DNA of 64,000 bases from Schmidtea nova (lineage: Eukaryota). A program made the translations under genes and the position numbers. The stretch lies in contig CM097884.1 of the NCBI GenBank assembly GCA_044892505.1, positions 99,758,001 to 99,822,000 on the forward strand, in the 5' to 3' direction. The notes under the pieces were generated by a model that was given only the letters and a program-made list of their open reading frames with translations, did no database searches and was not told where the DNA came from. Shown here in pieces: positions 34,212-64,000 of this stretch (position 1 is its first letter; each line of letters opens with the position of its first letter).

Positions 34212-34217
34212 TTCGAA

Positions 34218-34435
34218 AGTAGGTAGATGTGTGGAGCCGGGAACAAAGACAATATGACTCATGCGTGGGCGGAAAAAAGAAGAACAAAGACCCCCCCGGG
34301 GGGGGTAGAAAAATTTTTTTTTGATGAGTCATCGATGACTCATCGATGACTCATCATTTTTATGACTCATCGATGACTCATCATTTTTATGACTCATCGA
34401 TGACTCATCATTTTTATGACTCATCGATGACTCAT
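34218..34435 (+). repeat. Left TIR with ATGA(C/G)TCAT array
   Basis: Inverted match to 45150-45339. Ten ATGA(C/G)TCAT palindromes and a C7G8 hairpin. Confidence 0.95.
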
Positions 34436-35801: not shown

Positions 35802-36000
35802 AACAAAAGGTAATTGAGAGTTGAGTATGATGGTCAACCCTCGAAGGGTCCAAGGTTCAAAATTTTTAAAACTATGTAATATATGTATCAAACAAAAGGT
35901 AATTGATAAATGAGTTTAATGGACATACCATTGAAGGTGGGTGGTCGACCCTCGAAGGGTCCAAGGTTCAAAATATTTAAAACTATGTAATATATGTATC
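34480..36000 (+). repeat. About 120-bp tandem array (about 12 diverging copies with variable (TA)n)
   Basis: Unit TCGAAAGGTATTTGAGAGGTAGGTATGCTGGTCATACCCTCGAAGGTCTATGG...AACCTTCAAAGGGTGCAAAACCTTCAA. Present on the left side only. Confidence 0.9.
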
Positions 36001-36012
36001 AAACAAAAGGTA

Positions 36013-39000
36013 ACACTTTGCAACACATGTGCAACATTTACAAAGACATTGCAATCCACATGCAACGTAAACAAAGACATTTCTTTGCCAAATTTCATAA
36101 TAAAGACATTTCATTGAAAAATTTCATAACAAAGACACTTCAATGCCAAAAAACTAAACAAAGACATTTCATTGCAAAATTTCATAACAAAGACATTTCA
36201 ATGCCAAATTTCATAACAAAGACACAACAATGCCAAATTTCATAACAAAGACATTTCAATGCCAAAAAACTAAACAAAGACATTTCATTGCAAAATTTCA
36301 TAACAAAGACATTTCAATGCCAAAAAACTAAACAAAGACATTTCATTGCAAAATTTCATAACAAAGACATTTCAATGCCAAATTTCATAACAAAGACTTT
36401 TCAATGCCAAAAAAAATTAAACAAAGACATTTCATTGAAAAATTTCATAACAAAGACATTTCATTGCCAAAAACTAAACAAAGACATTTCATTGCCAAAA
36501 ACTAAACAAAGACATTTCATTGCCAAATTTCATAACAAAGACATTTCATTGCCAAATTTCATAACAAAGACATTTCAATGCCAAAAAAAAAAACTAAACA
36601 AAGACATTTCATTAGCAAATTTCATAACAAAGACATTTCATTGCAAAATTTCATAACAAAGACAATTCATTGCAAAATTTCATAACAAAGACATTTCATT
36701 GCAAAATTTCATAACAAAGACATTTCATTGCAAAATTTCATAACAAAGACATTTCATTGCAAAATTTCATAACAAAGACATTTCAATGCCAAATTTCATA
36801 ACAAAGACATTTAAATGCCAAAAAACTAAACAAAGACATTTCATTGCAAAATTTCATAACAAAGACAATTCATTACCAAAAAACTAAACAAAGACATTTC
36901 ATTGCCAAATTTCATAACAAAGACATTTCATTGCCAAATTTCATAACAAAGACATTTCATTGCCAAATTTCATAACAAAGACATTTCATTGCAAAACACC
37001 TAAACAAAGACATATCAATACCAAAATAACTAAACAGAGACACGAACATTTACTAGCAGAACATTTACTATCAGAACATCTTTTGTGATGGTTTTTATCT
37101 GCCAAAGCTTATTACTCGAACATTAATTACAATTCAACTTCATTCAGCATCATTTGATAAAACAAAGACATATCATTGTCAAAACACCTTAACAAAGACA
37201 TTACAGTACCCATGCATTGTAAGCAACATACTAACAAAGACATTACAGTACCCATGCAGTGTAAGCAACATGCTAACAAAGACATTGCAATACAGATGCA
37301 AGTTAACAAAGACATTGCAATACAGATGCAAGTTAACAAAGACATTGCAATACAGATGCAAGTTAACAAAGACATTGCAATACATATGCAAGTTAACAAA
37401 GACATTGCAATACATATACAAGTTAACAAAGACATTGCAATGTAGATACTAGTTAACAAATNNNNNNNNNNNNNNNNNNNNNNNNNNNNNNNNNNNNNNN
37501 NNNNNNNNNNNNNNNNNNNNNNNNNNNNNNNNNNNNNNNNNNNNNNNNNNNNNNNNNNNNNNNNNNNNNNNNNNNNNNNNNNNNNNNNNNNNNNNNNNNN
37601 NNNNNNNNNNNNNNNNNNNNNNNNNNNNNNNNNNNNNNNNNNNNNNNNNNNNNNNNNNNNNNNNNNNNNNNNNNNNNNNNNNNNNNNNNNNNNNNNNNNN
37701 NNNNNNNNNNNNNNNNNNNNNNNNNNNNNNNNNNNNNNNNNNNNNNNNNNNNNNNNNNNNNNNNNNNNNNNNNNNNNNNNNNNGGATTCAAAATTTTTTA
37801 AACAAATACATTGTAATGTCAAAACATCTTAACAAAGATATTGCAATACAGATACTGGTTAACAAAGACACACATGCAAGTTTTTAAACAAAGACATTGT
37901 AATGCCAAAACAATACATATGCAAGTTAACAAAGACATTGCAATACAGATGCAAGTTAACAAAGACATTGCAATACAGATGCAAGTTAACAAAGACATTG
38001 CAATACATATACAAGTTTACAAAGACATACATGCAAGTTAATAAAAAATATTCAAAAATATTCAAGGGTTCAAAATTTTTTAAAACTATATAAATATCAT
38101 GCGAAAGATATTTGAGATGTGTGTGTGTATATTTTCAAATCTTCAAGATGTCAAAATAATTAAACTACCACATCGTAATATATATATTAATTTTCCTACC
38201 CATTTTGACGCTGCAATTCATGTGCAATATTAACAAAGACATTGCAAAACAGATGCAAGTTAACAAAGACATTGCAGTTGCAAGCCAAGTTAACAAAGAC
38301 AACATGTCAAAAAAGACTAATTATTATTAATCACAAAGTGCATTCTCTTAGCCAATGATAAAAATAAATTAAATGAAAATACATATATTTTGTATGACAT
38401 TATATGTATATCACATGATATTCATCAATATTAATACCACAAGATTCACACTTATCAATATTGTTCAAACATTTTGAACAAATAATGACATGTCCACAAG
38501 GTAAATATAAAATACCAACTCTATTTATATTACATATTGAACATGTGAGAAATCTTTGTTTGATTTCTTCCAATTTCTTGGTTACATTTACCTCTAAAAT
38601 ATCCACATTCAGCATGAAAGTTCGAATAATAGTACGATATTTTCCAAGTCGAAATTCCATACATGACCAGAAAATGGTATTCAAATTGAATTCAGTAGAA
38701 TCGATATCATTAAGAATCATAATGAAACTGGACAATTTCATCATGGATTTATCATATCCGAATGATTCTGTTAAACCAATAATTAATTTATTATTGAAGG
38801 ATTTGAATAATTTTGAAAGAATGTCGATATCGCATTTCTCAATCGAAGTTAAAAGGTCATCAAGTATTAAAAATGATTGGATCCAATTGTCCAAAGTAAT
38901 GAAATTATCTGTAACCTATTTTAAAATAATTAATTTAAATATATATTTTTCAAACTAACTTTATTTGTTTCTTTATTCATTTTCGTCAATCAATACTATT

Positions 39001-39229
39001 TACAAGTTGTATTTATATTGCAAAAATCAACCAATTTAATAACCAACCATTTTATTAACCAACCAATTATTGAAAGTTTTGCTAAACTGCTACATTAAAA
39101 TGATGATAAGGGACATTGAAAATTAGGTAACAATATATTTATTATTAGAAATATGTTCAAGTAATGAGCTTTTGCACATAAAAACCATCACAGAATAGGT
39201 TCTGCTACTAGGGTTCTGCTCGCAATGTT
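36013..39229 (-). repeat. Left arm of internal inverted repeat (about 3.2 kb)
   Basis: Reverse complement of 41410-44712, apart from scattered SNPs and repeat-number differences. Contains AACAAAGAC arrays with 29-30-bp units and the RING gene. Confidence 0.9.
38400..38980 (-). CDS. IAP/Mdm2-type C-terminal RING protein (about 178 aa, one predicted 44-nt intron), copy 1
   Basis: CSICNINRVGILYLPCGHVIICSKCLNNIDKCESC at the extreme C-terminus. ATG at 38980, mirror of copy 2. Confidence 0.8.
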
Positions 39230-41409
39230 CTGCTCGCAATGTTCTGCTACTAAATGTTATGTCACTATGACAAATACATGAAAAATTATCATACTATTGA
39301 GATAATCACACAAATTATTCTTAAATTATAATACAAATATATCAAAAATATATGAAATATACATTACATACTTGAAATATTATCACAAAGTATCATTACA
39401 TACATGAAATATCTACATATTTGCTCAATTACATAGAAAATCATCAAAGTTACACACAAAATATGAAAAGTATATAGAAATTCGTCACATACAAAAACAT
39501 CGTATATATGAAATATTATCAAAGATACATAGAAATTTATCACACACGTACAAAATATCACCATACTATAGTGTATAACTATACATACAAAATATCAGAA
39601 ATACAAACATACATAAAATTTCATCTTACTATAGTTTGATAACATAGAAATACTTGAAATATTCACAAAATAAAGAAACTAACAAAGATATATAGAGTCA
39701 TCACACATGCAAAATATCACATATAAGAAATATCATTACAGATTATCACATGCATGAAATATTATTATTATTATAGTACAAATTACATAGAAAATAGTAA
39801 AGATACATGAAATATCATCAAAGAAAATACACACAGAATTATAGGAAATTTTCACACACTAGAAATACATACAATAATAATGATCATTAAAAGAATATTA
39901 TCACGCCAGTACAAAGTTTTACACAGAATATTATCATATTGAACAAAAGCTTATCATATATATGAAATATTATTATACTTTTATGTAAACTACAAAGAAA
40001 AATACAAACATATACACAAAATATTATCACATTATAGTGTCTAAACAATAGAAATACTCACAAAATATATAAATTTTGATCATAAAATATCAAAGATTCA
40101 CAAAGAAAATATATAAAAGATTATCATATTTTTGATTGATAACATGAAAGTACATTGAAATAGATAGAAATATTATTAAAATACATACAAGTATCAATAC
40201 ATACATGAAATATCTTACACAAAATGTTATAACATGCATGAAATATCTACATACAAAATATCAAAAGTACATAGAAATAAATCCTATACACAAAATATCA
40301 AAAGTACATAGAAATAAATCCTATACACAAAGGATATCATTACATATATAAAATATCATCATAAAATATCTTTACATACATGAAATATCATCATACTTTA
40401 ATGCAAATACAGACAAAATATTATCATGATATATTCCAAATACACTTAATAATTAAAAGAATATCATACATACACAAAGGATATCATTCACATGAAAAGT
40501 TGTCATGTTATAGTCAGTCAAAAGCATGAATTATTATCATCCTAGTGTAAAATACATATATATATATATAATATCAAATAATGTATCATACATACAAAGG
40601 ATATCATTACAAAGTATCATTACATACATTAAATATCATCACACTATAGTACAATTATATAGATAATCATCAAAAAATATACAGAAATTAAATCAAATTC
40701 ACAACAATATTCATTAAAGAAATATCTACATACTTGTGCAATTACATAATAAATATCAAAATTATATGAAATATCATCACATATGACATATTATCATACA
40801 TACACAAAGGATATAATATCACATACTTAGAAAATTATTATCACATACAAAATATCAAAAGTTCATTACATATGCAAAATATAATTACATATATCATTAT
40901 ACTATAATTTAACAGTAATAAATGTTTAACTAATGAGCTTTTGCACATAAAAACCATCACAAAAGATGTTCTGCTACTAGGGTTCTGTTCGCAATGTTCT
41001 GCTAGCAATGTTCTGCTACTGAATAAATTTGATGAAAATGTAACAATGTATTATGAATGGAAATAAATGCATGAAATATCGTCATACTATAGTGGAAATA
41101 TTAACAAATTGATATTAGATGCATCATATATTATCTTACTATAGTTTGATAACATAGAAAAAATATATATATAGAAATCATCAAAATTATACAAAATATT
41201 AAAAAAGATCATATTAAATATCATCACAAAGTACATAGAAAATCATAAAAATACACAGAAATTCATCAAATTCACAACAATAATCATTAAAGAAATATCT
41301 ACATACTAGTGTCATTACATAAAAAATATCTGAAAATATCTGATATATCATCACAAATATCAACACATATATGAAATATTATCACATACAAAAGTTCATT
41401 ACACATACA

Positions 41410-44400
41410 AACATTGCGAGCAGAACCCTAGTAGCAGAACCTATTCTGTGATGGTTTTTATGTGCAAAAGCTCATTACTTGAACATATTTCTAATAATAA
41501 ATATATTGTTACCTAATTTTCAATGTCCCTTATCATCATTTTAATGTAGCAGTTTAGCAAAACTTTCAATAATTGGTTGGTTAATAAAATGGTTGATTAT
41601 TAAATTGGTTGATTTTTGCAATATAAATACAACTTGTAAATAGTATTGATTGACGAAAATGAATAAAGAAACAAATAAAGTTAGTTTGAAAAATATATAT
41701 TTAAATTAATTATTTTAAAATAGGTTACAGATAATTTCATTACTTTGGACAATTGGATCCAATCATTTTTAATACTTGATGACCTTTTAACTTCGATTGA
41801 GAAATGCGATATCGACATTCTTTCAAAATTATTCAAATCCTTCAATAATAAATTAATTATTGGTTTAACAGAATCATTCGGATATGATAAATCCATGATG
41901 AAATTATCCAGTTTCATTATGATTTTTAATGATATCGATTCTACTGAATTCAATTTGAATACCATTTTCTGGTCATGTATGGAATTTCGACTTGGAAAAT
42001 ATCGTACTATTATTCGAACTTTCATGCTGAATGTGGATATTTTAGAGGTAAATGTAACCAAGAAATTGGAAGAAATCAAACAAAGATTTCTCACATGTTC
42101 AATATGTAATATAAATAGAGTTGGTATTTTATATTTACCTTGTGGACATGTCATTATTTGTTCAAAATGTTTAAACAATATTGATAAGTGTGAATCTTGT
42201 GGTATTAATATTGATGAATATCATGTGATATACATATAATGTCATACAAAATATATGTATTTTCATTTAATTTATTTTTATCATTGGCTAAGAGAATGCA
42301 CTTTGTGATTAATAATAATTAGTCTTTTTTGACATGTTGTCTTTGTTAACTTGGCTTGCAACTGCAATGTCTTTGTTAACTTGCATCTGTTTTGCAATGT
42401 CTTTGTTAATATTGCACATGAATTGCAGCGTCAAAATGGGTAGGAAAATTAATATATATATTACGTTGTGGTAGTTTAATTATTTTGACATCTTGAAGAT
42501 TTGAAAATATACACACACACATCTCAAATATCTTTCGCATGATATTTATATAGTTTTAAAAAATTTTGAACCCTTGAATATTTTTGAATATTTTTGAATA
42601 TTTTTTATTAACTTGCATGTATGTCTTTGTAAACTTGTATATGTATTGCAATGTCTTTGTTAACTTGCATCTGTATTGCAATGTCTTTGTTAACTTGCAT
42701 CTGTATTGCAATGTCTTTGTTAACTTGCATATGTATTGTTTTGGCATTACAATGTCTTTGTTTAAAAACTTGCATGTGTGTCTTTGTTAACCAGTATCTG
42801 TATTGCAATATCTTTGTTAAGATGTTTTGACATTACAATGTATTTGTTTAAAAAATTTTGAATCCNNNNNNNNNNNNNNNNNNNNNNNNNNNNNNNNNNN
42901 NNNNNNNNNNNNNNNNNNNNNNNNNNNNNNNNNNNNNNNNNNNNNNNNNNNNNNNNNNNNNNNNNNNNNNNNNNNNNNNNNNNNNNNNNNNNNNNNNNNN
43001 NNNNNNNNNNNNNNNNNNNNNNNNNNNNNNNNNNNNNNNNNNNNNNNNNNNNNNNNNNNNNNNNNNNNNNNNNNNNNNNNNNNNNNNNNNNNNNNNNNNN
43101 NNNNNNNNNNNNNNNNNNNNNNNNNNNNNNNNNNNNNNNNNNNNNNNNATTTGTTAACTAGTATCTACATTGCAATGTCTTTGTTAACTTGTATATGTAT
43201 TGCAATGTCTTTGTTAACTTGCATATGTATTGCAATGTCTTTGTTAACTTGCATCTGTATTGCAATGTCTTTGTTAGCATGTTGCTTACACTGCATGGGT
43301 ACTGTAATGTCTTTGTTAGTATGTTGCTTACAATGCATGGGTACTGTAATGTCTTTGTTAAGGTGTTTTGACAATGATATGTCTTTGTTTTATCAAATGA
43401 TGCTGAATGAAGTTGAATTGTAATTAATGTTCGAGTAATAAGCTTTGGCAGATAAAAACCATCACAAAAGATGTTCTGATAGTAAATGTTCTGCTAGTAA
43501 ATGTTCTTGTCTCTGTTTAGTTATTTTGGTATTGATATGTCTTTGTTTAGGTGTTTTGCAATGAAATGTCTTTGTTATGAAATTTGGCAATGAAATGTCT
43601 TTGTTATGAAATTTGGCAATGAAATGTCTTTGTTATGAAATTTGGCAATGAAATGTCTTTGTTTAGTTTTTTGGTAATGAATTGTCTTTGTTATGAAATT
43701 TTGCAATGAAATGTCTTTGTTTAGTTTTTTGGCATTTAAATGTCTTTGTTATGAAATTTGGCATTGAAATGTCTTTGTTATGAAATTTTGCAATGAAATG
43801 TCTTTGTTATGAAATTTTGCAATGAAATGTCTTTGTTATGAAATTTTGTAATGAAATGTCTTTGTTATGAAATTTGGCAATGAAATGTCTTTGTTTAGTT
43901 TTTGGCAATGAATTGTCTTTGTTATGAAATTTTGCAATGAAATGTCTTTGTTATGAAATTTGCTAATGAAATGTCTTTGTTTAGTTTTTTTTGGCATTGA
44001 AATGTCTTTGTTATGAAATTTGGCAATGAAATGTCTTTGTTATGAAATTTGGCAATGAAATGTCTTTGTTATGAAATTTTTCAATGAAATGTCTTTGTTT
44101 AGTTTTTTTTTGGCATTGAAATGTCTTTGTTATGAAATTTGGCATTGAAAAGTCTTTGTTATGAAATTTGGCATTGAAATGTCTTTGTTATGAAATTTGG
44201 CAATGAAATGTCTTTGTTATGAAATTTGGCAATGAAATGTCTTTGTTATGAAATTTTTCAATGAAATGTCTTTGTTTAGTTTTTTTTTGGCATTGAAATG
44301 TCTTTGTTATGAAATTTGGCATTGAAAAGTCTTTGTTATGAAATTTGGCATTGAAATGTCTTTGTTATGAAATTTTGCAATGAAATGTCTTTGTTTAGTT

Positions 44401-44712
44401 TTTTGGCATTGAAATGTCTTTGTTATGAAATTTTGCAATGAAATGTCTTTGTTTAGTTTTTTGGCATTGAAATGTCTTTGTTATGAAATTTGGCATTGTT
44501 GTGTCTTTGTTATGAAATTTGGCATCGAAATGTCTTTGTTATGAAATTTTCCAATGAAATGTCTTTGTTTAGTTTTTTTGGCATTGAAGTGTCTTTGTTA
44601 TGAAATTTTTCAATGAAATGTCTTTATTATGAAATTTGGCAAAGAAATGTCTTTGTTTACGTTGCATGTGGATTACAATGTCTTTGTTCATGTTGCACGC
44701 GTGTTGCAAAGT
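41410..44712 (+). repeat. Right arm of internal inverted repeat (about 3.3 kb)
   Basis: Mirror of 36013-39229. The arms are separated by a 2.2-kb AT-rich spacer (39230-41409). Confidence 0.9.
41659..42239 (+). CDS. IAP/Mdm2-type C-terminal RING protein (about 178 aa), copy 2
   Basis: ATG 41659, exon 1 MNKETNK, intron GTTAGT...AATAG (41680-41723), exon 2 in frame with ORF 41745..42239. TATAAATA at 41622-41629 and ATTGG boxes upstream. Confidence 0.8.
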
Positions 44713-45149: not shown

Positions 45150-45339
45150 TATGACTCATCGATGACTCATCAAAAAAAAAGTATGACTCATCGATGACTC
45201 ATCGATGACTCATCGATGACTCATCGGTGACTCATCAAAAAAAATTCTACCCCCCCGGGGGGAGGGGGTCTTTGTTCTTTTTTTCCGCCCACGCATGAGT
45301 CATAATGTCTTTGTTCCCGGCTCCACACATCTACCTACT
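45150..45339 (-). repeat. Right TIR with ATGA(C/G)TCAT array
   Basis: About 130 bp nearly identical (inverted) to the left end, with about 8 TGA(C/G)TCA sites. Confidence 0.95.
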
Positions 45340-46153
45340 TTCGAAATTCATCTTTTCTATCATTACACCAAATAGTCTTAATCCAATCCTTAGTCAACTC
45401 CTCATTCATCCATCCATTTTCTTGTGCTTTAACAATCATACCAGCTGGCCAATGAATGTTCTTTGGTAAAAATTTTCTTTTAAAAATTACATAAGGCGGC
45501 ATCTTCTTTCCGTCACCATAAGCTCCCAACATAACTGTAAACCGATTCTTTTCGTTGCCTGTAGTTTTAATAGGTACGGACTTGACTCCTTTGAAATCCA
45601 ATGTCTGAAATGAAGGTATATCAAAACTTAGTGGAGTCTGATCCCCATTTGCTATGCAACTAATTGGATATTCATGCCTTTTCCTTAAATTTATTATATA
45701 TTTCTGATAGTCGAGCAGCTTATTTTCTACATCATCCGGCAGTCGCTGTGCAATCGAAGTCCTTCTTCTTATAGAAATATCATTCCTTTTCATGAAGAGC
45801 TGGCACCAGCGCGCCGAGGCTTTAAATATTGAACCAGGATACATCTCCTTGACTAACTCTAAAGCCTTCAATCTAACTTCTACAGTGGATATTGAGGAAC
45901 CTGAAAATCGCCTTTCATGAACATATTCAACTAATTTTTTCTCCACGTCAGGAAAAAATAATTTTCTCCCTCTGCCAGGGGCCTTTGTAGAGGATCTGCA
46001 CTCTTTTAAAGTATTTTTATTTTTTCTCCAATGCCTTACATTAGCTTCACTGAGTCCATATTCTCTAGATGCTCCTCTATTTCCGATACGTTCGGCTGCT
46101 TCAATTACCTTCAATTTGAAACCTGTCGTATAACTGCAGCGTTTTGAAGACAT
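45340..46153 (-). CDS. pogo transposase, N-terminal half (Brinker DBD, CENP-B HTH, first catalytic D)
   Basis: YTTGFKLKVIEAA, FKASARWCQLFMKRNDISIRRRT, ANGDQTPL. Ends at the TSD (KDEFR). Confidence 0.95.
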
Positions 46154-50469: not shown

Positions 50470-50529
50470 AGTAGTAGGATGTGAGCGCATCAGATATAGG
50501 TCAAGACCCCCCCCTAGAAAAAATTTTTT

Positions 50530-51545
50530 TTTTATGTAGGTCGATTTAAGGTCAAATTTTTTATGTAGGTCGATTTAAGGTCAAATTTTTCGCTTAAGGA
50601 CACTTTAAGGACACTTTAAGGTCAAAAAAGTAGGTCAAGGTCGTTTTAAGGACATTTTAAGGTGAATTTAAGGTCAAATTTATGGTTTAAGGACACTTTA
50701 AGGACAATAAAGTAGGTCAAGGTTGTTTTAAGGACAATATAAGGTCAAAAAGTAGGTCGATTTAAGGCCACGATAAGGACAAAATAAGTAGGTCAAATAT
50801 TTTAAGGTGAATTTAAGGTTAAAATAAGTAGGTCAAATTTAATTTTCAAATTTTTTCTATGTCAGAAAAAAGTAGGTCAAATATTTTAAAGTTGCTATGA
50901 CAACGAATAAGTAGGTCAACTTAATTTTTTCAAAATTTGATAGTTGCTATGACAACGAATAAAGTAGGTCAATAATAATTTTGAAAATTTTTCTATGTCA
51001 GAAAAAAGTAGGTCAAATATAAAAAACTTGAAAATTATTCTATGTCAGAATTAAGTAGGTCAAATATAAATACTTGAAAATTTTTCTATGTCAGAAATAA
51101 GTAGGTCAACTTTATTTTTCTCAAAAATTTTTCTATGTCAGAATAAAGTAGGTCGATTTAGGGTCATGATGAGGACAAATTAAGTAGGTCAATAATAATT
51201 TTTAAAATTTTTCAATTAAAGTAGGTCAATAATTTTCAAATATTTCTAAGTTCGAATTAAGTAGGTTAATAATTTCTGTATATGGCTATCTTACGTGTCT
51301 GTATGTTTTTAATAAGGATAATAGTATGCATTGAACGCGCGTTTCACGCGCGTTCTTCTCCTGTTATTGTTTAAGGCAAATAACAGTACTCATTGAACGC
51401 GCGTGAAACGCGCGTTCTGCTTCTCTTGTTGTTTAAAATAAATAACAGTACGAATTTTCTAAGTCAGAAAAAAGTAGGTCAACTAGATAATTTTCTATGT
51501 CAGAATTATGTAGGTCAAATATAAAAACTTTAAAATTATTCTATG
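50530..51545 (+). repeat. Polinton subterminal repeat array (AAGTAGGTCA, TTTAAGG[T/A]CA)
   Basis: About a dozen exact AAGTAGGTCA copies spaced about 40 bp apart, plus variants. Two GC-rich hairpins at 51333-51355 and 51395-51417. Confidence 0.9.
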
Positions 51546-51839
51546 TTAAAAANNNNNNNNNNNNNNNNNNNNNNNNNNNNNNNNNNNNNNNNNNNNNNNN
51601 NNNNNNNNNNNNNNNNNNNNNNNNNNNNNNNNNNNNNNNNNNNNNNNNNNNNNNNNNNNNNNNNNNNNNNNNNNNNNNNNNNNNNNNNNNNNNNNNNNNN
51701 NNNNNNNNNNNNNNNNNNNNNNNNNNNNNNNNNNNNNNNNNNNNNNNNNNNNNNNNNNNNNNNNNNNNNNNNNNNNNNNNNNNNAAACTACAATCCAAAT
51801 TACTAAAATTTATTGAATATAACATTTATAAAATAATAT

Positions 51840-52256
51840 TTATGTATATCGTGCACTGTCGATTCTCCAAATTGGAGTTATAACATCTTTGGTATCGATT
51901 TTATAACCCTGAATGATTATGGTAATAAACCAATTTTCTTGATCCTTGTATTCGATAGATTGGAAAGCATCATGGAAACGGGTTTTTCGATTGTTGATCC
52001 ATATAGTTTCCTTGCAGCTTAAATTGTTATTGATTTTGAATAAAACTTTATTTAGTGCAACAACATCTTCTTTACTTAGATTTGCGGCTAAATTATCATA
52101 CAATGACTTTGTTAATTTAACTGGATACGATAAACGAAATGGTATTTCTTGAACCAGGAAATAAATTTTGTAATCGTAATACATTTGTACTGGTTTCACT
52201 TCATTATTGATTTTTCTTTCTTCACTGATGTCATAAGTTGATTTACGTGCTGGCAT
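51840..52256 (-). CDS. Polinton accessory protein, 138 aa, possible OB-fold ssDNA-binding protein
   Basis: Intact ORF. The C-terminal pattern WFITIIIQGYKIDTKDVITPIWRIDSARY suggests beta-strands of viral SSBs. Function is inference. Confidence 0.55.
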   Translation of the reverse strand: MPARKSTYDISEERKINNEVKPVQMYYDYKIYFLVQEIPFRLSYPVKLTKSLYDNLAANLSKEDVVALNKVLFKINNNLSCKETIWINNRKTRFHDAFQSIEYKDQENWFITIIIQGYKIDTKDVITPIWRIDSARYT

Positions 52257-52734
52257 TTTATAAATTGTGACAACATCTTAAAAATGTCTTTGTATTTATA
52301 GTGATGAGTTATGTCTTTGTCCAATCAAAATCATGCATTTGTATGACTGCATGTCTTTGTTTTGCATGCATATGTATGTGTGTGTCTTTGTTGTATGTAT
52401 GATTGTGTGTTTAATTAATGTGTTTATCAACTTTATTTATCATGTTTTTATCATAATAAAAAATGACTTTTCAAAATTTAAAACTAATTATCGTGTTTTC
52501 TATCATATTAAATAATGACTTTTCAAAATTAAAACATATCACAGAAACTTATTTACATTCAAAAAGTTATTCTACTAATTTTTTACTTTATCTTTCTTTA
52601 AAGACTTTTATTTTTACTTTAAAATACACTAAAATAAAGTGAAATAAAAACCGAAGACATAAATAAATAAACATTTATTAAAGCGTAACAAAAATAATAA
52701 CATATAACAAATAAAAATGATAATACAAAAACAT

Positions 52735-53342
52735 TTATTCAACCATGTCAATATCATTATCAACTTTGCGATGGCATTCATCGCAATTGGGTGATTCTGG
52801 TGATTCTTGCGATGCTGGAGACTGATCGCATTCCAGCGGATATGGTCCATCGATGGTTGGTGCTGGACAATTTGAAGAATCGGGACCATCAGTATTTTGG
52901 TCACATTCGGACGCATCTTCAGGAGTTGAGTTTGGCCATTGTATTGGTGTTTCTTCATTTTCTTTTTCTTTTCGAGAATCCATCTCGAAATTTTTGAGCG
53001 CCTTTCTCAAAACCCAAATCCGATATTTTGCAATTCTATCTGTACAGTGACCGCATTGGTAGGCACAAAGAATGTGCTCTGCCATGAATGGCAGCTCCAA
53101 ATCCAAGTTGGCCAGGTGATCTAGCAAGACCTGGTTAATATCAATCCCATTGATCGATAATATTTTGATTGGGAGCATTTCCGGAGCTGTATAAATTAAA
53201 TTCGCCATTAGATTAGGAAACATCTCCTCTACTTTCCCTAAAAGAACTGTCATTAATTTATCTAAAAAATAAATATTATAATAATGAAAAATAATAAATT
53301 CAAAACTTTACCATATTTCACTAGAGTGGATTTTAGACACAT
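52735..53342 (-). CDS. Polinton accessory protein (about 185 aa, two predicted exons), unknown function
   Basis: Exon 1 53342-53312 (MCLKSTLVKY), 50-nt GTAAAG...TTTAG intron, exon 2 from 53261 in frame with ORF 52735..53253. Acidic, Pro-rich tail. Confidence 0.65.
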
Positions 53343-53514
53343 TGTAAAATTATAATGAATGAAAAATATTCATTCTATATATACCAAAGTAACACACAAG
53401 AAATTGAAACACACAATCAACAAATCAGATTCGAGTATGTATAATATGTCTTTATTATTGAAATAGACACTGAACCAATCAGAATCGTGCATTTCTTTTG
53501 CATCTTATTTGCAA

Positions 53515-53982
53515 TCATGAGTCACACGATAATATGAAATCAACAAAGGCTTTATCTTCAATAATTGATTTTATATCTGTAATAATATTATCAACTATAT
53601 TTAAATAGTCTTTGTCTTTTAAACCTAATATAACTATTTTACCACTTGCAAATATATTAACACACATGGGATTATATTTTATATATCTCAAAGCTGGAAA
53701 TAATTCAGGCTCATAAACACATTCTAGTAATTTAGCCAAATCATTTAAATTACAAATAAATCCTAAATCTGACGTTACAGTAATCGATTGGATTGTTAAA
53801 TCATAAATCTTTACTTTTTCATCACTTATAAATTCCTTGCATCCCATAATTCTAAATCTCCCGGTCTTAAAATATATTATCGGATATTTACCACTTCTAT
53901 CAATAATTTGTTGTGGTTTCCCCTTAGGAAATTTCATGTGTGATACATCTGTCTTACCCTTATAATTTATGTTGCTAATCAT
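53515..53982 (-). CDS. TATA-binding protein (TBP)-like protein, 155 aa
   Basis: Second TBP repeat clear: TIQSITVTSDLGFICNLNDLA...YEPELFPALRY...NIFASGKIVILGLK. First repeat shortened: ISNINY...IIYFKTGRFRIMGCK. Confidence 0.88.
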   Translation of the reverse strand: MISNINYKGKTDVSHMKFPKGKPQQIIDRSGKYPIIYFKTGRFRIMGCKEFISDEKVKIYDLTIQSITVTSDLGFICNLNDLAKLLECVYEPELFPALRYIKYNPMCVNIFASGKIVILGLKDKDYLNIVDNIITDIKSIIEDKAFVDFILSCDS

Positions 53983-54044
53983 TACTGGAAATTTTTTAAA
54001 TATGATAATAATAATTAAAACTATTATTTAAAACAAATATAAAC

Positions 54045-54087
<43 letters not shown>

Positions 54088-54103
54088 TAATAAAATAAAA
54101 AAT

Positions 54104-54727
54104 ATGGAATTAAGAAATGATGCAGTGTTTCAAATTGTTGGACCAAGCGGGAGTGGAAAAACTTTATTTGTTTGTAAATTATTACAATCAAAATTATTTA
54201 AATCAAAGTTTAATAAAATTTATTGGCATAGGGGTGCGGATGATGAACATGGAATGACTCAAGATCAATTTTGTAAAATAAAAATGACTATAATAAAAGG
54301 TTTCGATAAAAATTGGTCATCTAGATTAAGAGAAGGGGATGTGATTATTATTGATGATTTGTACCAAGAAGCAAATAAAGAAAAGGATTTTAACAATTTA
54401 TTTACCAAAATCGCTAGACACAAAGGTGTTACAGTCATATTTATTACTCAGAATTTATTTCATCAGGGCGGTAGTCATCGAACTCGTAATTTGAATGTTC
54501 AATATCTTGTTGTTTTTAAAAATCCTAGAGACGCAACAGTGATTGATTTTCTTGCAAGACAAGCATACCCTTCTAATCGTAATTTCTTGATTGATGCATT
54601 CCAAGATGCCACAAAAGCACCTCATGGATATCTTTTTCTTGATTTCACACAACAATGTAGTGATGATTTAAGAGTTAGAACCTATATTTTCAACAAGGAA
54701 GGAGCCATGGTTTATAAACAAAGTTAA
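54104..54727 (+). CDS. Polinton DNA-packaging ATPase (A32/FtsK-like)
   Basis: Walker A GPSGSGKT, Walker B VIIIDDL, ARHKGVTVIFITQN, FKNPRD. Confidence 0.95.
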   Translation: MELRNDAVFQIVGPSGSGKTLFVCKLLQSKLFKSKFNKIYWHRGADDEHGMTQDQFCKIKMTIIKGFDKNWSSRLREGDVIIIDDLYQEANKEKDFNNLFTKIARHKGVTVIFITQNLFHQGGSHRTRNLNVQYLVVFKNPRDATVIDFLARQAYPSNRNFLIDAFQDATKAPHGYLFLDFTQQCSDDLRVRTYIFNKEGAMVYKQS

Positions 54728-54747: not shown

Positions 54748-55290
54748 ATGTTAATGAAATCTAGAGTAAAGTTTGAGCGCTTGATAAAGGCTAGAAAAAT
54801 GAAGAAACCGGGAAAGAAATTAGTTTCAAAGAAAGTATTTACAAAGAAAACAAAGAAACCAGTTTCAAAAACTAGTTATACACCATCTAAAAAATTACTT
54901 ATTGATAATATCCCAAAAAGTAATCGTATTCAAAATACTTACAAACCAAATCCAAAACAAATACATCATCGTAGTTTCCCATTTTTCAACGCATTACTTA
55001 AAGCCCCTAGTATTAGAAGAATGAGTATTTTACAATCGTTTCCTAATTACGTTATTGACGATTTACTAATGATTTTAATTAAAGTTGTTAGAGGTAAAAT
55101 CAATATAAGTGAATCTAATAGAAGAGTTTTGAACAAACACAAGAAACCATTGTTATCACTTGTAAAAACCAAAAATAGAAAATTAATGCGTAAAATAATA
55201 TATAAACAACAAGGAGGGTTTATTGCAGCATTGTTACCATTAGCATTATCACTATTAGGAGGTGCTGGTTTATTAGGAAAACAGTCATAA
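54748..55290 (+). CDS. Basic Polinton core/virion protein with hydrophobic C-terminal peptide
   Basis: Lys/Arg-rich. Ends QQGGFIAALLPLALSLLGGAG, similar to the adenovirus pX-type GG-hydrophobic tail. Confidence 0.7.
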   Translation: MLMKSRVKFERLIKARKMKKPGKKLVSKKVFTKKTKKPVSKTSYTPSKKLLIDNIPKSNRIQNTYKPNPKQIHHRSFPFFNALLKAPSIRRMSILQSFPNYVIDDLLMILIKVVRGKINISESNRRVLNKHKKPLLSLVKTKNRKLMRKIIYKQQGGFIAALLPLALSLLGGAGLLGKQS

Positions 55291-55345
55291 ACAATGGGAC
55301 AATCATTGCCTAATCTTAATTTAAACTTTAAATCTTCTTGTTGTA

Positions 55346-56393
55346 ATGGAGAAGATTTGGACCAACCCAAAACACGAAGCAGGTTTCGGTGGAGTCGAAA
55401 AGCTAAGCAAAAATGTATTGAATTCGAAAAAACAGACTCAAAGTTGGTTATCGGGGCAACTTGCATACAGTCTAAACAAACCGATGCTGAAACGGTTTCC
55501 GACTCGAGCATATAAAACATATAGAATTAATGATTTGTGGCAAATGGATTTGATGGAAATGATTCCGTATTCAAAAATTAACAAGGGATACAAGTATATT
55601 TTAACATGTATTGATGTTTACAGTCGTTTCGCTCGAGCTATTCCAGTAAAATCTAAATCTGCTAATGATATGGCAATCGCAATCAAAACAATGATGAAAA
55701 AGGATCGTCCAACTAATTTACAAACTGATTTGGGTAAGCTAATAAATATTTTATATAATGATAATTATTTATCCAGGTAAGGAATTTTACAATAGCAAAG
55801 TCAAAGAAATTATAAAGGGAATCAATCATTACTCAGTATTCTCTCAATTCAAAGCCGCTCATGTTGAAAGACTTAATCGTACATTACGAGATCGTCTCAA
55901 AAAATATTTTGTGCATCAAGGTAATAAAACATGGATTAATGTTTTACCACAAATTATTCATAGTTATAATCATTCTGCTCATCGAGGTATAAATGGAAAG
56001 AAACCTGCTGAAGTAGTTGATACTGAAAATATTTTGAGTGATACAAAAATAAAGAAACCAAAATATAAAATAGGTGATCATGTTCGAATTAGTAAAATTA
56101 GCGCATCGCCATTCATTAAAAATTTTGATGGTAATTGGAGTGATGAGGTATTTCAAATATCGAAAGTCAACACAGTCCAGAATCCTGTCATGTATACTAT
56201 TTCTGATTCTGATAACAATATAGTCAGTGGAAAATTCTATGAACAAGAATTACAAGTTATTCCCCCTCCGACAATATTTAGAATTCAAAAAATATTGAAA
56301 ACTAAAATGGTCGGTAAAGATAAACAATACTACGTCAAGTGGCATGGATATAAAGAACCATCATGGATATCGTCAAAAAACCTAGTAAAGTGA
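55346..56393 (+). CDS. Retroviral-type integrase with C-terminal chromodomain; one predicted 43-nt intron (55734-55776)
   Basis: WQMDL (D), LQTDL|GKEFY (D), AAHVERLNRTL (E). Chromodomain YYVKWHGYKEPSWI. Confidence 0.95.
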
Positions 56394-57409
56394 ATTTTTA
56401 TACTATATTACCAAGTAATAGCTGTCCGCTAATACATCCAGACAATCAAGCCAGTAAATTCATGGTCAATCTTCAAAATCCAATTTATTTAGATGGTAAT
56501 TGGGAAGTTGCATTACAAGATTTCACGTTTGTGTACAATACATTTCCATTTTATAGTCAATGTAAGATTGATTACAAAAGAATTGAAAATAGAACATGCA
56601 GTGGTCTATTCATCATCAACAATTTTGAAAGAATTTATAATATTCCTAACCAAAATTTGAATGTTCATTGTAGTATGTATTTCAGCAATGGTTGTTTAAA
56701 TATTAATTGTGATTTTACTCCATATACAATTACATTTAAAAATATTGAAGAAGCCAAGCGAATGGGAAGTAATCAACTTAAAATTGTGAGTACACTGAAA
56801 GAATATCAATTAAAGTTCATATTATTTGAACCGAATAGTTATTTGAAAGAAGATATTACGGTGACAATATCTTATGAGGCAGAAATTGAAGATACATTTA
56901 CATTTGCAAATGATTTGTATATAGTACAATTGGAAGATTTATCTAAATATTTATCATTCAATTGTTCCCATATCTTTAAAACTCTAGAGATTAATAAATG
57001 GTTCCAATTCTGTCTCAATGATAATATTAGTGAAGTTACATTTGATAAAAACTTGGTCAATACTTTAGGATTAGCTAAACAAACGTATAGAGACCGAAAC
57101 CTTATCGATGGGACTGTGAAACCTAAAATACTTGTTCATCATCAACAAATGTTCATTTACAGTAACATTATTGAACCAATAATTGTCGGTGATTCTCTGG
57201 TTCCTCTACTGAAATCTGTATGGATCGAAAAATATGAACAGGATGAAGTTGTACAAATAGTAATGGATAATCCAATGTACTTACCTATTTCTACCTCATG
57301 TATAAACAATATAGAAATAAATATACGTGACGATAGTGGTAAATTAATAAATTTTCCAAAAGATTCAAAAACATATTTGACATTACATTTTCGTAAATTA
57401 AATGAGTAA
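56363..57409 (+). CDS. Minor capsid protein (penton, PX)
   Basis: FYTILPSNS...NQASKF.V.L..PI.L.G.WEVAL; IYSNIIEP.IVGD...PLL; YLPI...INNIEINIRDDSG...F...LTLHFRK. Confidence 0.9.
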   Translation: MDIVKKPSKVNFYTILPSNSCPLIHPDNQASKFMVNLQNPIYLDGNWEVALQDFTFVYNTFPFYSQCKIDYKRIENRTCSGLFIINNFERIYNIPNQNLNVHCSMYFSNGCLNINCDFTPYTITFKNIEEAKRMGSNQLKIVSTLKEYQLKFILFEPNSYLKEDITVTISYEAEIEDTFTFANDLYIVQLEDLSKYLSFNCSHIFKTLEINKWFQFCLNDNISEVTFDKNLVNTLGLAKQTYRDRNLIDGTVKPKILVHHQQMFIYSNIIEPIIVGDSLVPLLKSVWIEKYEQDEVVQIVMDNPMYLPISTSCINNIEINIRDDSGKLINFPKDSKTYLTLHFRKLNE

Positions 57410-57767
57410 TCCCGATATAATTTCATTGTATAGTAATAGCCAAACCGGTGGTGAATTACCGTATTTTGTAGGTAAGCAGTATGGATCAGGTTGGTTGAAA
57501 ACTATTGGTAGATTTGCACTTCCAATTCTTAAACGACTAGGTAGTTTTGGAATGAAAACTGCTAGAGATGTTATCATGAAAGACCAGAAAATATTGCCTT
57601 CATTGAAAACGAATGCTATGGATGCTGTTTCAAAAGCGATTCCTTCAATTACAAATATGTTTACAAAAAAAGAACCTGAACCTGAACCAGTAGAACCAAA
57701 ACGTAAAAAAGGTAGAAAGCGTATAAACAATCGAATGAAAGGACATGGAACTATATTTGAAGAATGA
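57402..57767 (+). CDS. Conserved small Polinton virion protein (QxGxG type, amphipathic helix)
   Basis: SQTGGELPYFVGKQYGSGWLKTIGRFALPILKRLG. Overlaps the stop and start codons of its neighbours. Confidence 0.75.
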   Translation: MSNPDIISLYSNSQTGGELPYFVGKQYGSGWLKTIGRFALPILKRLGSFGMKTARDVIMKDQKILPSLKTNAMDAVSKAIPSITNMFTKKEPEPEPVEPKRKKGRKRINNRMKGHGTIFEE

Positions 57768-58983
57768 TTTGCGGTAAATCTGAATTATGTCTTTTTGATC
57801 GACCATCTCCCCAAGCAGTTATTGAATATGGGGTGTTTGAAGATGTGTTTCCAATGAATTCCATTACAGATAGTAGAAATGATATCGAATTTTACATTAA
57901 CGGTTCACAAACCGAATATTTAGATTTGAATGATACTTTATTATCCGTTACTGTCAAAGTTGTAGATAAAGATAAAAAACAATTAGCTGATGCTAGTGAT
58001 GTAGTACCTAATAATTACCTGTTTCATACACTTTTCAAAGATGCAATTCTTGGATTTAATAATATAAAGGTTGAAGGTGGAAACAATACATATGCGCACA
58101 AGGCAATAATTGAAACTATTTTAAATTATACTAGTGATGCAAAAGAAACTTGTCTTACTCCAATGGGATACGGCGCATCTGACGATAGAAAAAAGTGGAT
58201 TAAAGGATCGAAACTTTTCAACATGTGTTCATCATTACAACTAGATTTTTTGGATCAACCTAAATATTTACTTCCTGGAGTTAATGTACATATTAGATTG
58301 AAGAGATCTGATTCTGCATTATCATTGGCATCTACAGCTGGGAAACCAATAATACAAATAGTAGATGCAAAATTAATGGTACGAAGAGTTCGATGTGAAT
58401 CTTCAGTATTAGCTGGGCATCAAATTGGATTAAATAACAAACATGCAATTTATCCGATAAAATCAAAAGAAATTGTATCTTTTGCAATCGGTAAAGGGGC
58501 ATCATCTTTTTACAAGGAGCAAATATTTGGAGATAGAAGAATGCCTAATTTCATTCTTGTAGCTTTTCAAACTGAAAATCAATATAACGGATCTTATTCT
58601 GCTTCTTCATCTACATTCAAACATTTCAATGTAACATCATTATCTCTGTCAAAAAATACTGATTATCGGGAAACTTATAATCAAGATTTTGAAAATGATA
58701 ATTTTAGTGCCACATATATGCAAAGTCTTGTCCGGAATTTAGGATATTTGGATAAAAACTTGAATTGTGGTATAAGTCTAGATGAATTTAAATCAAGTTA
58801 TCCATTCTTACGTTTGTTCTTGCTCCTGATTTCGATTTGAATCAAAGTCAAATCCCTCAAAATGGAAATTTACGATTAGATATCAAATTTGGTAAAGCCA
58901 TTGAGGAACCGGTTCATGTATTAATATATGGAGTTTTTGAAAATGAAATCCAAATTACTGCAAATCGAACAGTATTAGTTTGA
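57764..58983 (+). pseudogene. Double jelly-roll major capsid protein (PY) with a single 1-nt frameshift near 58810
   Basis: KSELCLF, IEFYING...YLDLNDTLL, LQLDFLDQPKYLLPGV, YPI. The conserved C-terminus (FVLAPDFD...GNLRLDIKF...LIYGVFENEIQI) continues in another frame to TGA at 58981-58983. Confidence 0.9.
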
Positions 58984-59048: not shown

Positions 59049-59431
59049 ATGGAGTAAGATTTTAATTTGTAAAAATAATTAATTAAATTAGTTCAATTCA
59101 GGTATATAGACTTGGCAAAAAACTATTGGGAAATCAATTTATTGGAGTTTATCCATTAGATAAAATTCCTTATCTGGATGTTAATCAAGCTATCATCGTA
59201 AAAACTCAGACATCTACTTTGGGTGGTGAACATTGGATTGCTGTTTACGTTAAACCAGATCGAATATATGCATTTGATCCATTTGGATGTTATTATCCCA
59301 ATTTATTAGTTAGTAAATTGCAAACTTTGGGTAAACCGATTGTATACAATAGAATTCGATATCAACATCCATTAACAATTACTTGTGGTCAACATTGTCT
59401 TGCATGGTTATTATCCATGTTATATGTATAA
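59049..59431 (+). CDS. Adenain-like cysteine protease (start uncertain, possibly spliced)
   Basis: FIGVYPLD, GGEHWIAV (His), FDPFG (Asp), YQHPLTITCGQHC (Gln/Cys). Confidence 0.9.
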
Positions 59432-59463
59432 ACAATTTAATAAAAATAAAATTTAGTATAAAA

Positions 59464-59850
59464 ATGACTTGTTATTTTATTGATTTTATAGGAATTTACA
59501 ATAATGGAAGATTAATTATTAATGAATTATGTATTATAAACGTTAATAATATTTTTAGACCTAAATATTACATATATAATAAAGTTTGTAGTGAGTGGTA
59601 TGAGGAGGAAGATTACTTTTGTCCAACATGTATTATGAAAGATATTGAAGATAGTAATGCTATTTTCTATGTCACGGATATGGATAAACTTATTGCTTTG
59701 AAGAAATATTTTCCCACTTTGAGACTAATCAAATATAATTTAAAAGAAATTGAAGATGTTCCAGATAATATTTCTTGTCCCTATAGAGACCATAGTATGT
59801 GTGCCTATAAAGAATGTTTGCGTAGTGTTATAGATTATTTAAAGTCATAA
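59464..59850 (+). CDS. Polinton accessory protein, 128 aa, Cys-rich C-terminus
   Basis: Intact ORF. N-terminal FIDFIG...IINEL and C-terminal CPYRDHSMCAYKEC. Confidence 0.6.
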   Translation: MTCYFIDFIGIYNNGRLIINELCIINVNNIFRPKYYIYNKVCSEWYEEEDYFCPTCIMKDIEDSNAIFYVTDMDKLIALKKYFPTLRLIKYNLKEIEDVPDNISCPYRDHSMCAYKECLRSVIDYLKS

Positions 59851-60735: not shown

Positions 60736-61512
60736 GTAAGTTTTTATTCTATTTTTATAGCATTTTGAAATACTTTTTTAATTTTATAATATATAATTAA
60801 TAATTTTATAATATGTAATAAATGATTTTCTTAATATTAATAATAATAATTTTACTATTANNNNNNNNNNNNNNNNNNNNNNNNNNNNNNNNNNNNNNNN
60901 NNNNNNNNNNNNNNNNNNNNNNNNNNNNNNNNNNNNNNNNNNNNNNNNNNNNNNNNNNNNNNNNNNNNNNNNNNNNNNNNNNNNNNNNNNNNNNNNNNNN
61001 NNNNNNNNNNNNNNNNNNNNNNNNNNNNNNNNNNNNNNNNNNNNNNNNNNNNNNNNNNNNNNNNNNNNNNNNNNNNNNNNNNNNNNNNNNNNNNNNNNNN
61101 NNNNNNNNNNNNNNNNNNNNNNNNNNNNNNNNNNNNNNNNNNNNNNNNNNNNNNNNNNNNNNNNNNNNNNNNNNNNNNNNNNNNNNNNNNNNNNNNNNNN
61201 NNNNNNNNNNNNNNNNNNNNNNNNNNNAAATAATTTATGATATTATTTTAATAATTTTAAACTATTTAAGATATTTCAAGACATATCATAGTAAATTCGT
61301 TACTATAATATTTCTTCAAATATTTTAAACTTACTATTTCAAGTTATTTTTATAATAATAATAATTTACGTTATCTCACGATGAAATCGAGATAATGTAC
61401 AAATATTTTATAATACTATTTTAATTCAATTTTAATTGTATAATTTTAATTTTATATTCTATTTTAATAATAATAATAATAAACATTTTATAATTTTCTC
61501 CTGTATATTCAG

Positions 61513-64000
61513 GCTCTCTATACCCTAAATATTGCAACATGTCAGGTAGTCACATCACTCAATGCCACAAACTCATGACTGTTTATTATCGTCAGAAGTT
61601 TAATGGCATTGATTACTATATATGCCCAAAATGTGAGACTTCACAATCCCTACCCTACTCTGATTTTTATTCTAAACATCATGAGCATCTTACACAATTT
61701 TTCAAATCGAAAAAACTTATTTTTAAAAAATGTAAAAATCAATCTTCTTCGTCGATTAAGGTATCTACTGAGAAATCAACTTCTTTGAATAATGTATCTG
61801 CTGAGAAATCGTCTTCGGTTAAAATTTCGTCGAATAATGTATCTGTTGATAATTCTTCTAAGAATAAATTACTCAATAATTTATTAAATAATTCAGACGT
61901 TCAAATTATTAATATAAATAATAATAATAATAATAATAATAATATCAAGAAAAGACCTGCTGATAAAATTAAAATTATTGCACCTAAAAAATATAAACCA
62001 GAAGTAATTATAATTAGCGACGATGAGGAAATTATTAATCAAATAGGAGGATCTATTGATATCGACGATGAGCCTGTAGTGGAAAAAGACTTAAGGGGAT
62101 CTCGACGCTCGTTAACTTTTAATGTCGAATCCCATAATATTAATCAAATTGCTGTCACAGAAAAAATTTCTGTGCGGTTAAATAAAGAAATTATCAAAAT
62201 GGGGAACGTAAAAATTCAATTCGCCCTTAATATTGAATTTGAAAAAGATGGGGTCTTTAAGAATGAATTTTTGTCCACTAAAGCTGAGATCTTTTCAGAT
62301 AATTTCTTAATAGAAAGCATTAGGAAATTATATAATAAAATAGAAAATTTTACACAACGGGGTAGCGGCTGGATTGTTAATAAAATAATGGAAATCCATT
62401 TTATTTTGACAAAAATTTCTACCATGAATCGATTATCTGGCCACGGACATTTTGAAACTCCTAACCCATTAAAAAATAAAAGGGCAATTATAAATGTAAA
62501 AAATTCAGATGATTTATGTTTTATATATAGTGTTTTGGCTATAACAAAATATAATTTAATCGTTAATAATCATAGTTCAGCCTCGAGTTATGTACCGTAT
62601 TTAAATGATTTAGTTTTTGACCCTTTAAAAGACTGTCCCATGAAATTATGCAATATCCCTAAATTCGAAAATAATAACCCTGGCTTAGCCATTAATGTGC
62701 TATCTTATAACCCTAAAGTGATTAGAAATAACAATATAGATATAGAAGATGATGATTATGTTCCTCATCATCCCCACTTGGTAATAATCCATCGCACAAA
62801 ATTAAATCATTTAAACCCTATTTATCTTTTATTATTAGAAGATAAGGGAATTTTCCATTATACTGCAGTTATTAATCTGCAAAGGTTAATGAACAGTAGT
62901 ATAAATAGTACAGTTACCAATAGGATTCAGTCGATATGGTGTCCCAGATGTTTAAACGGTTTCCGTATTCAGGAAACCTTTGATAAGCATTTTAATTTAT
63001 GTAAAAATAATCAAATAGGTGCAACCCTTTATAGTCTACCAAAAAATAAATATTTAGAATTTAAGGACTATTCCAAAACCGTAACCCCACCTTTCGTAAT
63101 TTATGCTGACTTTGAGTCAATTTTATCGGGTGATGACAGGTATCACCAAAAACATTTACCGATATCAGCAGGTCTATTACTTTTAAATAATTTAAATAAT
63201 TCAAAATCATATTATGAATTTATAGGTCTTGAATGTGTGTTAGAATTTTTAAAGAAAGTGGAGGAAATTGCTGTCACAATAGTACTCCCGTATTATGATT
63301 TATTCGGAAATACTCCATTAGGGCCTTTATCATTTGCTGAGCAGGAAGCTTTTAGGACTTGTTCAAATTGTTATTTATGTAAGAAACCAATTAGAAATAG
63401 AGTTCGTGATCACGATCACTTTTCTGGTAGATATCTTGGCGCTGCTTGCAACATTTGTAATATTTCCCGTAGAATTAGAAAACACTTACCTGTTATTTTT
63501 CATAATTTGAAAGGTTATGACCTACATCACATTTTGAAGTATGGTCTGTCTGATTGTTCATCTTGGGAATTAAATATTATTCCGACTACTACAGAGAAAT
63601 TTATTTCTCTTATAGCTCACATTGATAAACTTGCTGTTAGGTTTATTGACAGTTATCAATTTGTATCAGAGTCTTTAGATAATGCGGTTAAAACTCTGTC
63701 AGTTTTTCCCTTAACATCTTCAGTTTTCACTGGTTCAATTATGGATTGTAAGGGTATTTTCCCTTTTAATTTTGCTACGAGTCTTGAAGTCCTAGAATCC
63801 ACTCTTGAATTGCCTCCGATTTGGGCTAAGGTGTCTGAGGCTGATTATTTACGAGCTCAACAAATTTGGACTGAAAATAATTGTCTCAACTTGTTAGACT
63901 ATATGAAGGTTTATCTAAAGTTGGATGTATTTCTTCTAGCGGATTACTTTCAACAATTTCGAGCTAAGTCCATTGCTCACAATGGCTTAGATCCCTTAAA
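61513..64000 (+). CDS. Protein-primed family B DNA polymerase, main exon, open to the window edge
   Basis: Hand translation is open throughout. QRGSGW; OTU-like DLCF...FHY; Zn finger WCPRC; Exo I VIYADFES; HNH/endonuclease VII-like insert CYLC...RDHDHFSG...CNIC; Exo II IFHNLKGYD; Exo III YLKLDV. Confidence 0.97.

Follow-up and report, generated by a model that had tools for sequence, protein, structure and literature searches.

A Polinton-like mobile element that encodes a conserved, shortened homologue of the TATA-binding protein

An intact open reading frame (ORF) of 155 codons was found on the minus strand at positions 53515 to 53982 of a 64,000-nucleotide stretch of AT-rich, probably animal, genomic DNA (hereafter, the window). 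It has an ATG start and no internal stop, and about 0.03 ORFs of this length are expected by chance in the whole window at its base composition. The ORF encodes a TATA-binding protein (TBP)-like protein and lies inside a Polinton/Maverick-type element that runs from about 51.8 kb to beyond the end of the window. It is divergently oriented from, and 121 bp away from, an A32-type packaging ATPase. The features of the element and its left flank are as follows.

50528 to 51552, no strand assigned: array of short direct repeats (units of about 10 to 11 and 46 to 47 nt) that abuts a masked stretch just left of the first element gene and may be the terminal region of the element.
51840 to 52256, minus strand: 138-amino-acid (aa) protein of unknown function.
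52735 to 53253, minus strand: 172-aa ORF between the TBP-like gene and the 138-aa gene, Cys containing, with an acidic and Pro-rich tail, of unknown function.
53515 to 53982, minus strand: TBP-like gene, 155 aa; the N-half (aa 1 to 56) is a remnant of TBP repeat 1, predicted to be helix-less, and the C-half (aa 58 to 153) is a complete repeat 2.
53983 to 54103, no strand assigned: divergent 121-bp spacer between the TBP-like and ATPase genes, 5.8% GC, with an (ATA)n run and one ATAAACAA site.
54104 to 54727, plus strand: A32/FtsK-type genome-packaging ATPase, 207 aa, open.
54748 to 55290, plus strand: 180-aa ORF of unknown function, its C-terminal part conserved in relatives.
55346 to 56393, plus strand: rve integrase with C-terminal chromodomain, with one change of reading frame relative to three relatives.
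56363 to 57409, plus strand: 348-aa conserved protein of the virion module; a minor capsid or penton protein is a guess from its position.
57402 to 57767, plus strand: 121-aa conserved small protein.
57764 to 58980, plus strand: capsid protein with a weak double-jelly-roll signal, with one change of reading frame relative to the ~407-aa relatives.
59126 to 59850, plus strand: adenain-like cysteine protease (Peptidase_C5), read in two ORFs.
61539 to 64000, plus strand: long open frame (820 codons, no stop) that runs off the window end, its last 159 aa being protein-primed family B DNA polymerase (pPolB).

The ATPase matches Pox_A32 with an E value of 2.7e-6 (27.5 bits against a cut-off of 22.8), and the integrase matches rve (E value, 7.9e-9) and Chromo (E value, 6e-5). 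The protease matches Peptidase_C5 with an E value of 6.7e-5 (23.1 bits against a cut-off of 21.3), and the end of the long open frame matches DNA_pol_B_2 (E value, 1.5e-5). The capsid protein scores only 19.7 bits (E value, 5.5e-4) against the Pfam DJR-like domain, below the cut-off of 27, but it has 134 homologues of about 407 aa, with up to 81% identity, all of them unnamed metagenome or assembly proteins. Two masked stretches lie at 51553 to 51784 and 60861 to 61227. No inverted repeat was found to pair the two sides of the element within the window, whose end falls short of the right end of the element and in which the left end abuts the first masked stretch. The TBP-like gene, the ATPase, and the visible part of pPolB are open, whereas the integrase and capsid genes each contain one frame change; this copy may be inactive, or the changes may be assembly errors.

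The protein matches Pfam TBP (PF00352) with an E value of 4.6e-14 (52.5 bits against a cut-off of 22.9) in one stretch at aa 62 to 129. A sequence search of the PDB returned 35 TBP chains and nothing else of note, the best being the TBP of Methanococcus jannaschii (E value, 1.3e-18), and a profile of the family matched PDB TBPs at 2.6e-21. The single complete repeat of the ORF scores higher against TBP repeat 2 than against repeat 1 (45 versus 24 bits) and is therefore the counterpart of repeat 2. In a profile-profile comparison with TBP-type proteins (E value, 1.5e-31), the N-half aligned to repeat-1 strands S2 to S5 and skipped helix H2. The two halves of the protein also match each other locally (E value, 6e-5), although a global alignment of the two halves failed (E value, 0.1). 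The PDB scores of archaeal and eukaryotic TBPs interleave, leaving the origin of the gene unresolved.

An AlphaFold2 model built on an alignment of 51 sequences has a pLDDT of 92.9 and contains four strands and no helix in aa 1 to 50, followed by a complete S1-H1-S2-S3-S4-S5-H2 repeat. In a Foldseek search of the PDB with this predicted structure, the top 44 hits (E value, ≤0.001) were all TBP, with about 170 aligned columns, so that both halves are covered, and TM scores of 0.64 to 0.70. The predicted saddle keeps its continuous concave sheet of ten strands, but both helices of the first repeat are lost. By alignment (ORF numbering), three of the four DNA-kinking Phe residues of TBP are conserved in 51 of 51 sequences: F95 and F111 of repeat 2 and F38 of the repeat-1 strand 4, in the sequence FKTG. 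The repeat-1 stirrup Phe position is Lys in the window and in 36 of 51 sequences and is never Phe; a nearby F18 is present in 46 of 51 sequences but does not align to that position. The dyad Asn and Thr positions, whose residues hydrogen-bond the central TATA base pairs in TBP, are replaced by Ser66 (51 of 51, at the repeat-2 dyad Asn position), Met46 (51 of 51), and Leu119 (48 of 51). Only the N-terminal strand keeps Asn (N4 in 49 of 51 and N6 in 50 of 51), and its register is not fixed by any alignment. The C-terminal stirrup E-P-E-L-F, which in cellular TBP is probably the TFIIB contact, is invariant or nearly so, with E91 and E93 invariant and P92 and L94 at 90% or more; R99 and G114 are also invariant. 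These results agree in every point that could be checked with a preliminary description of the locus, which had reported an intact ORF with an unmistakable second TBP repeat, a truncated first repeat that keeps FKTG but lacks one Phe, and a Ser in place of the second dyad Asn.

The gene is not a one-off host capture. The ORF has 68 homologous clusters (at 90% identity) in public metagenomes and assemblies, which are 40 to 62% identical to it, are nearly all 144 to 174 aa long, and all carry PF00352. A profile search of 1.8 billion representatives found 60 at an E value of <1e-30, and most of the best 150 were matched in one stretch across both halves of the protein. In the 51 aligned members, at 38 to 61% identity, 15 columns are invariant and the N terminus is conserved from the second residue on; the short form is therefore the native form. 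The three groups of longer contigs that carry a homologue (L001, L002, and L005/L006) are all collinear Polinton-like elements with ATPase, rve integrase, and a ~410-aa capsid protein, and two of them also show pPolB. The ATPase of the window is 71 to 77% identical to the ATPases of L001, L002, and L005, and its pPolB matches that of L001 with an E value of 3.9e-40. The protease is also in two ORFs in L001. In all four elements, the TBP-like gene lies just outside the ATPase end of the virion-gene block and next to the same ~125- to 155-aa gene, represented in the window by the 138-aa gene (E values of 1e-18 to 2e-20 to L001 and L002 and 3e-8 to L005). Its orientation relative to the ATPase varies, being divergent in the window and L005 and co-directional in L001 and L002.

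The two ORFs downstream of the TBP-like gene (the 172-aa and 138-aa ORFs) were examined for TFIIB- or TFIIA-like partners, and no family or PDB match was found; the 172-aa ORF has only a weak 31-aa match to a small L005 protein. Inverted CCAAT boxes occur upstream of these two ORFs, but the word is not enriched in the window (11 found against 11.4 expected).

Interestingly, inspection of the upstream regions for TATA boxes revealed the word ATAAACAA, usually with T on either side (T-ATAAACAA-T) so that it contains TATAAA, at eight sites between 54039 and 59435.

54039 to 54046, plus strand: 65 nt before the ATPase ATG.
54714 to 54721, plus strand: 34 nt before the ATG of the 180-aa ORF.
55202 to 55209, plus strand: 92 nt before a 73-codon ORF that is conserved in L005.
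55287 to 55294, plus strand: 59 nt before the integrase ATG.
56320 to 56327, plus strand: 43 nt before the ATG of the 348-aa ORF.
57302 to 57309, plus strand: 100 nt before the ATG of the 121-aa ORF.
57723 to 57730, plus strand: 41 nt before the capsid-protein ATG.
59428 to 59435, plus strand: inside the protease region, upstream of its second ORF.

All eight sites are on the plus strand, against about 0.7 expected (P = 6.5e-7), and each lies 34 to 100 nt upstream of a gene start. In an unbiased ranking of 4639 8-mers, run after the motif had been noticed, only the (ATA)n microsatellite words and one other word scored better. The three relatives show the same strand bias, with 11, 11, and 8 sites on the module strand against 1, 3, and 0 on the other and about one expected per strand, and the sites again lie before gene starts, although the comparison rests on only these three related elements. 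No such site lies 8 to 130 nt upstream of the TBP-like gene or pPolB in any of the four elements. A literature search for the motif returned only unrelated primer sequences.

The preliminary description had proposed either a dedicated promoter-recognition factor for the element or a TBP mimic or decoy, and the motif in front of the virion-module genes fits the former better than the latter. We infer that the factor is made from a promoter without the motif, binds the variant TATA box T-ATAAACAA-T, which lies about 35 to 100 nt upstream of nearly every gene from ATPase to protease, and recruits host TFIIB and RNA polymerase II there, thereby turning on the virion and integrase module. In TBP-TATA co-crystals, the N-terminal repeat contacts the 3' half of the box; here the N-terminal repeat is the altered one, and the motif departs from the TATAWAWR consensus in its 3' half (C at position 7). 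Loss of the repeat-1 helices might also remove surfaces that host regulators of TBP use. We consider this reading about as likely as not. The link between motif and factor is circumstantial, with no DNA binding, TFIIB binding, or expression observed. Since the motif contains a canonical TATAAA, host TBP alone could serve it, and with the dyad residues replaced and one of the four Phe missing, TATA-type binding is not assured. More tentatively, a lineage of probably animal-associated Polinton-like viruses may run a two-tier transcription program in which a "one-and-a-half-repeat" TBP reads this box in front of every virion and integrase gene, the remodeled half of the factor matching the altered half of the box, as a minimal counterpart of the herpesvirus late-gene TBP system in the smallest class of eukaryotic double-stranded DNA viruses. 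Polintons, Mavericks, and adintovirus-like viruses are assumed to rely wholly on host polymerase II factors, and the TBP derivative and the motif together provide a concrete hypothesis of self-directed, staged transcription.

Other roles appear less likely. The protein could be a decoy that sequesters TFIIB or occupies host TATA boxes, damping host transcription or host defense genes, because a TBP that has lost the repeat-1 helices and one Phe while keeping the stirrup resembles a dominant negative, and L005 carries Bcl-2-like and RING genes beside it. However, conservation of three Phe residues and the whole ten-strand sheet is more than a TFIIB trap would need, and the motif gives the factor an obvious target in front of the element's own genes. 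An architectural role, in which the saddle bends AT-rich DNA for replication initiation at the termini, for integration, or for packaging, is similarly unlikely. It draws support from the adjacent packaging ATPase, the nearby terminal-looking repeat array, and the probable occurrence of TBP-fold domains in nontranscription proteins such as RNase HIII and DNA glycosylases, but the similarity is to TBP proper, including the stirrup, every significant PDB fold hit is TBP, and the orientation relative to the ATPase is not conserved.

Equally doubtful is a general replacement of host TBP at all element promoters, or in a host in which TBP is limiting, without any link to the ATAAACAA class. Other promoters in the element do carry TATA boxes, such as TATAAATA 44 nt before the 138-aa gene, yet this reading explains neither why the altered half of the protein matches the altered half of the motif nor why the motif class excludes the factor's own gene, both of which are weak arguments. 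A functionless relic, whether a recently captured host TBP fragment or a chance ORF, might be suggested by the truncated first repeat and the broken neighboring genes, but it is very unlikely given the shared layout, length, and N terminus of the 51 homologues and the synteny in four elements, and it is refuted as far as sequence evidence can do so.

The presence of a TBP-like gene in this class of element is not new, and the novelty implied by the preliminary description, whose author knew of no TBP in a Polinton, is not supported as worded. A "TBP" gene, which may or may not belong to the present family, is already labeled in maps of MELD viruses with adintovirus-like PolB (Starrett et al. 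2021, PMC8502044, Fig. 5), in a figure legend in the section on datasets from nonanimal eukaryotes and without analysis, and automatic annotation by JGI names several homologues TBP. No paper in the literature searched analyzes such a gene, and the other Polinton and PLV papers examined do not mention it. The conserved one-and-a-half-repeat architecture, the size of the family, its fixed place in the element, and the motif appear to be undescribed.

Compared with cellular TBP, the protein has about 150 aa instead of a core of about 180 aa. The TBP homologues of giant viruses (Nucleocytoviricota), including entries named TATA-box-binding protein in BFVD, are the best viral structural matches (E values, 2.5e-6 to 1e-3), but they are longer (186 to 547 aa), belong to viruses that bring their own RNA polymerase, and are more distant (9 to 20% identity in the structural alignments); the best BFVD hit has an E value of 2.5e-6 at 18% identity, against 4.6e-8 and 23 to 28% identity for PDB cellular TBPs. 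The closest functional analogue is the herpesvirus late-gene TBP mimic (BcRF1/ORF24/UL87), a factor that probably reads a variant TATA element (TATT) in front of late genes transcribed by host polymerase II. This is an analogy only, as BcRF1 appeared at rank 38 with an E value of 0.048 and a TM score of 0.34, and the herpesvirus proteins are apparently large and bind polymerase II directly. The TBP-related factor TLF/TRF2 (TBPL1) likewise appears to serve a subset of promoters with altered DNA-contact residues, but it probably keeps two full repeats and has probably lost the intercalating Phe, and no TLF-specific match came back from any search.

The protein is also a natural experiment in TBP architecture, in that the predicted saddle keeps its sheet while one half has lost both helices, and the motif may be useful as an annotation marker for gene starts in this element family. 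Rfam found no RNA gene in the window. Assignment of the surrounding genome to a small animal is likely but not proven and is based on its GC content of about 30%, a soluble-guanylate-cyclase-like first exon at 30114 to 30893, mariner and pogo transposases, and the Bcl-2-like gene of L005.

The strand-specific motif ATAAACAA (T-ATAAACAA-T) was found at eight sites on the + strand between 54039 and 59435, lying 34-100 nt upstream of nearly every gene from ATPase to protease. The motif is conserved in three related elements (L001, L002, and L005) and is absent upstream of the TBP-like gene and pPolB, and it looks like a promoter class of the virion module. The two ORFs downstream of the TBP-like gene are each preceded by an inverted CCAAT box (TGATTGG) (52290-52330 and 53385-53481, minus strand), and the 138-aa gene is also preceded by TATAAATA at -44. 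These look like host-type Pol II promoters, although the CCAAT word is not enriched in the window.

Directly left of the first gene of the element, at 50528-51552 and next to a masked stretch, lies a dense array of short direct repeats consisting of AAGTAGGTCAA-type and TTTAAGGACA-type units with periods of about 10-11 and 46-47 nt, which may represent the terminal region of the element. The pPolB open frame has about 660 codons ahead of the polymerase domain (61539-63520, plus strand), and these include three 45-nt tandem units (61745-61867) and a weak endonuclease-VII-like match (E 0.0016).

A large, nearly perfect inverted repeat was discovered within 36000-44600, flanked by tandem repeats of about 29 nt and comprising the following arms:
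38039-39229 and 41410-42600, arms at 99%
36655-37400 and 43150-43895, outer arms at 98%

Masked stretches lie inside both arms. Each arm carries a 164-aa ORF with an IAP-type RING finger (zf-C3HC4_3; E 2.8e-9) that resembles the RING protein of L005. L005 carries a Bcl-2-like gene between the ATPase and the TBP-like gene, as well as a RING-finger gene further on (8091-8576 and 10662-11075), and the same is true of L006, nearly the same 11-kb contig having been assembled in two samples. This suggests an animal host.

The window also contains a probable host gene exon and transposase sequences:
30114-30893, minus strand, 259-aa ORF with H-NOX and HNOBA domains
22322-23359, minus strand, intact 345-aa mariner (Mos1-type) transposase
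16648-17103, second, partial mariner-like ORF
45335-46153 and 33694-34332, both minus strand, Pogo/Tc5-type transposase remnants (BrkDBD, HTH_Tnp_Tc5, and DDE_1)

The 259-aa ORF aligns from residue 1 of soluble guanylate cyclase beta-1 (E 9.6e-33) and is probably the first exon of a host gene. The intact mariner transposase is 97% identical to a protein from a JGI metagenome, so the host or a close relative is present in environmental samples.
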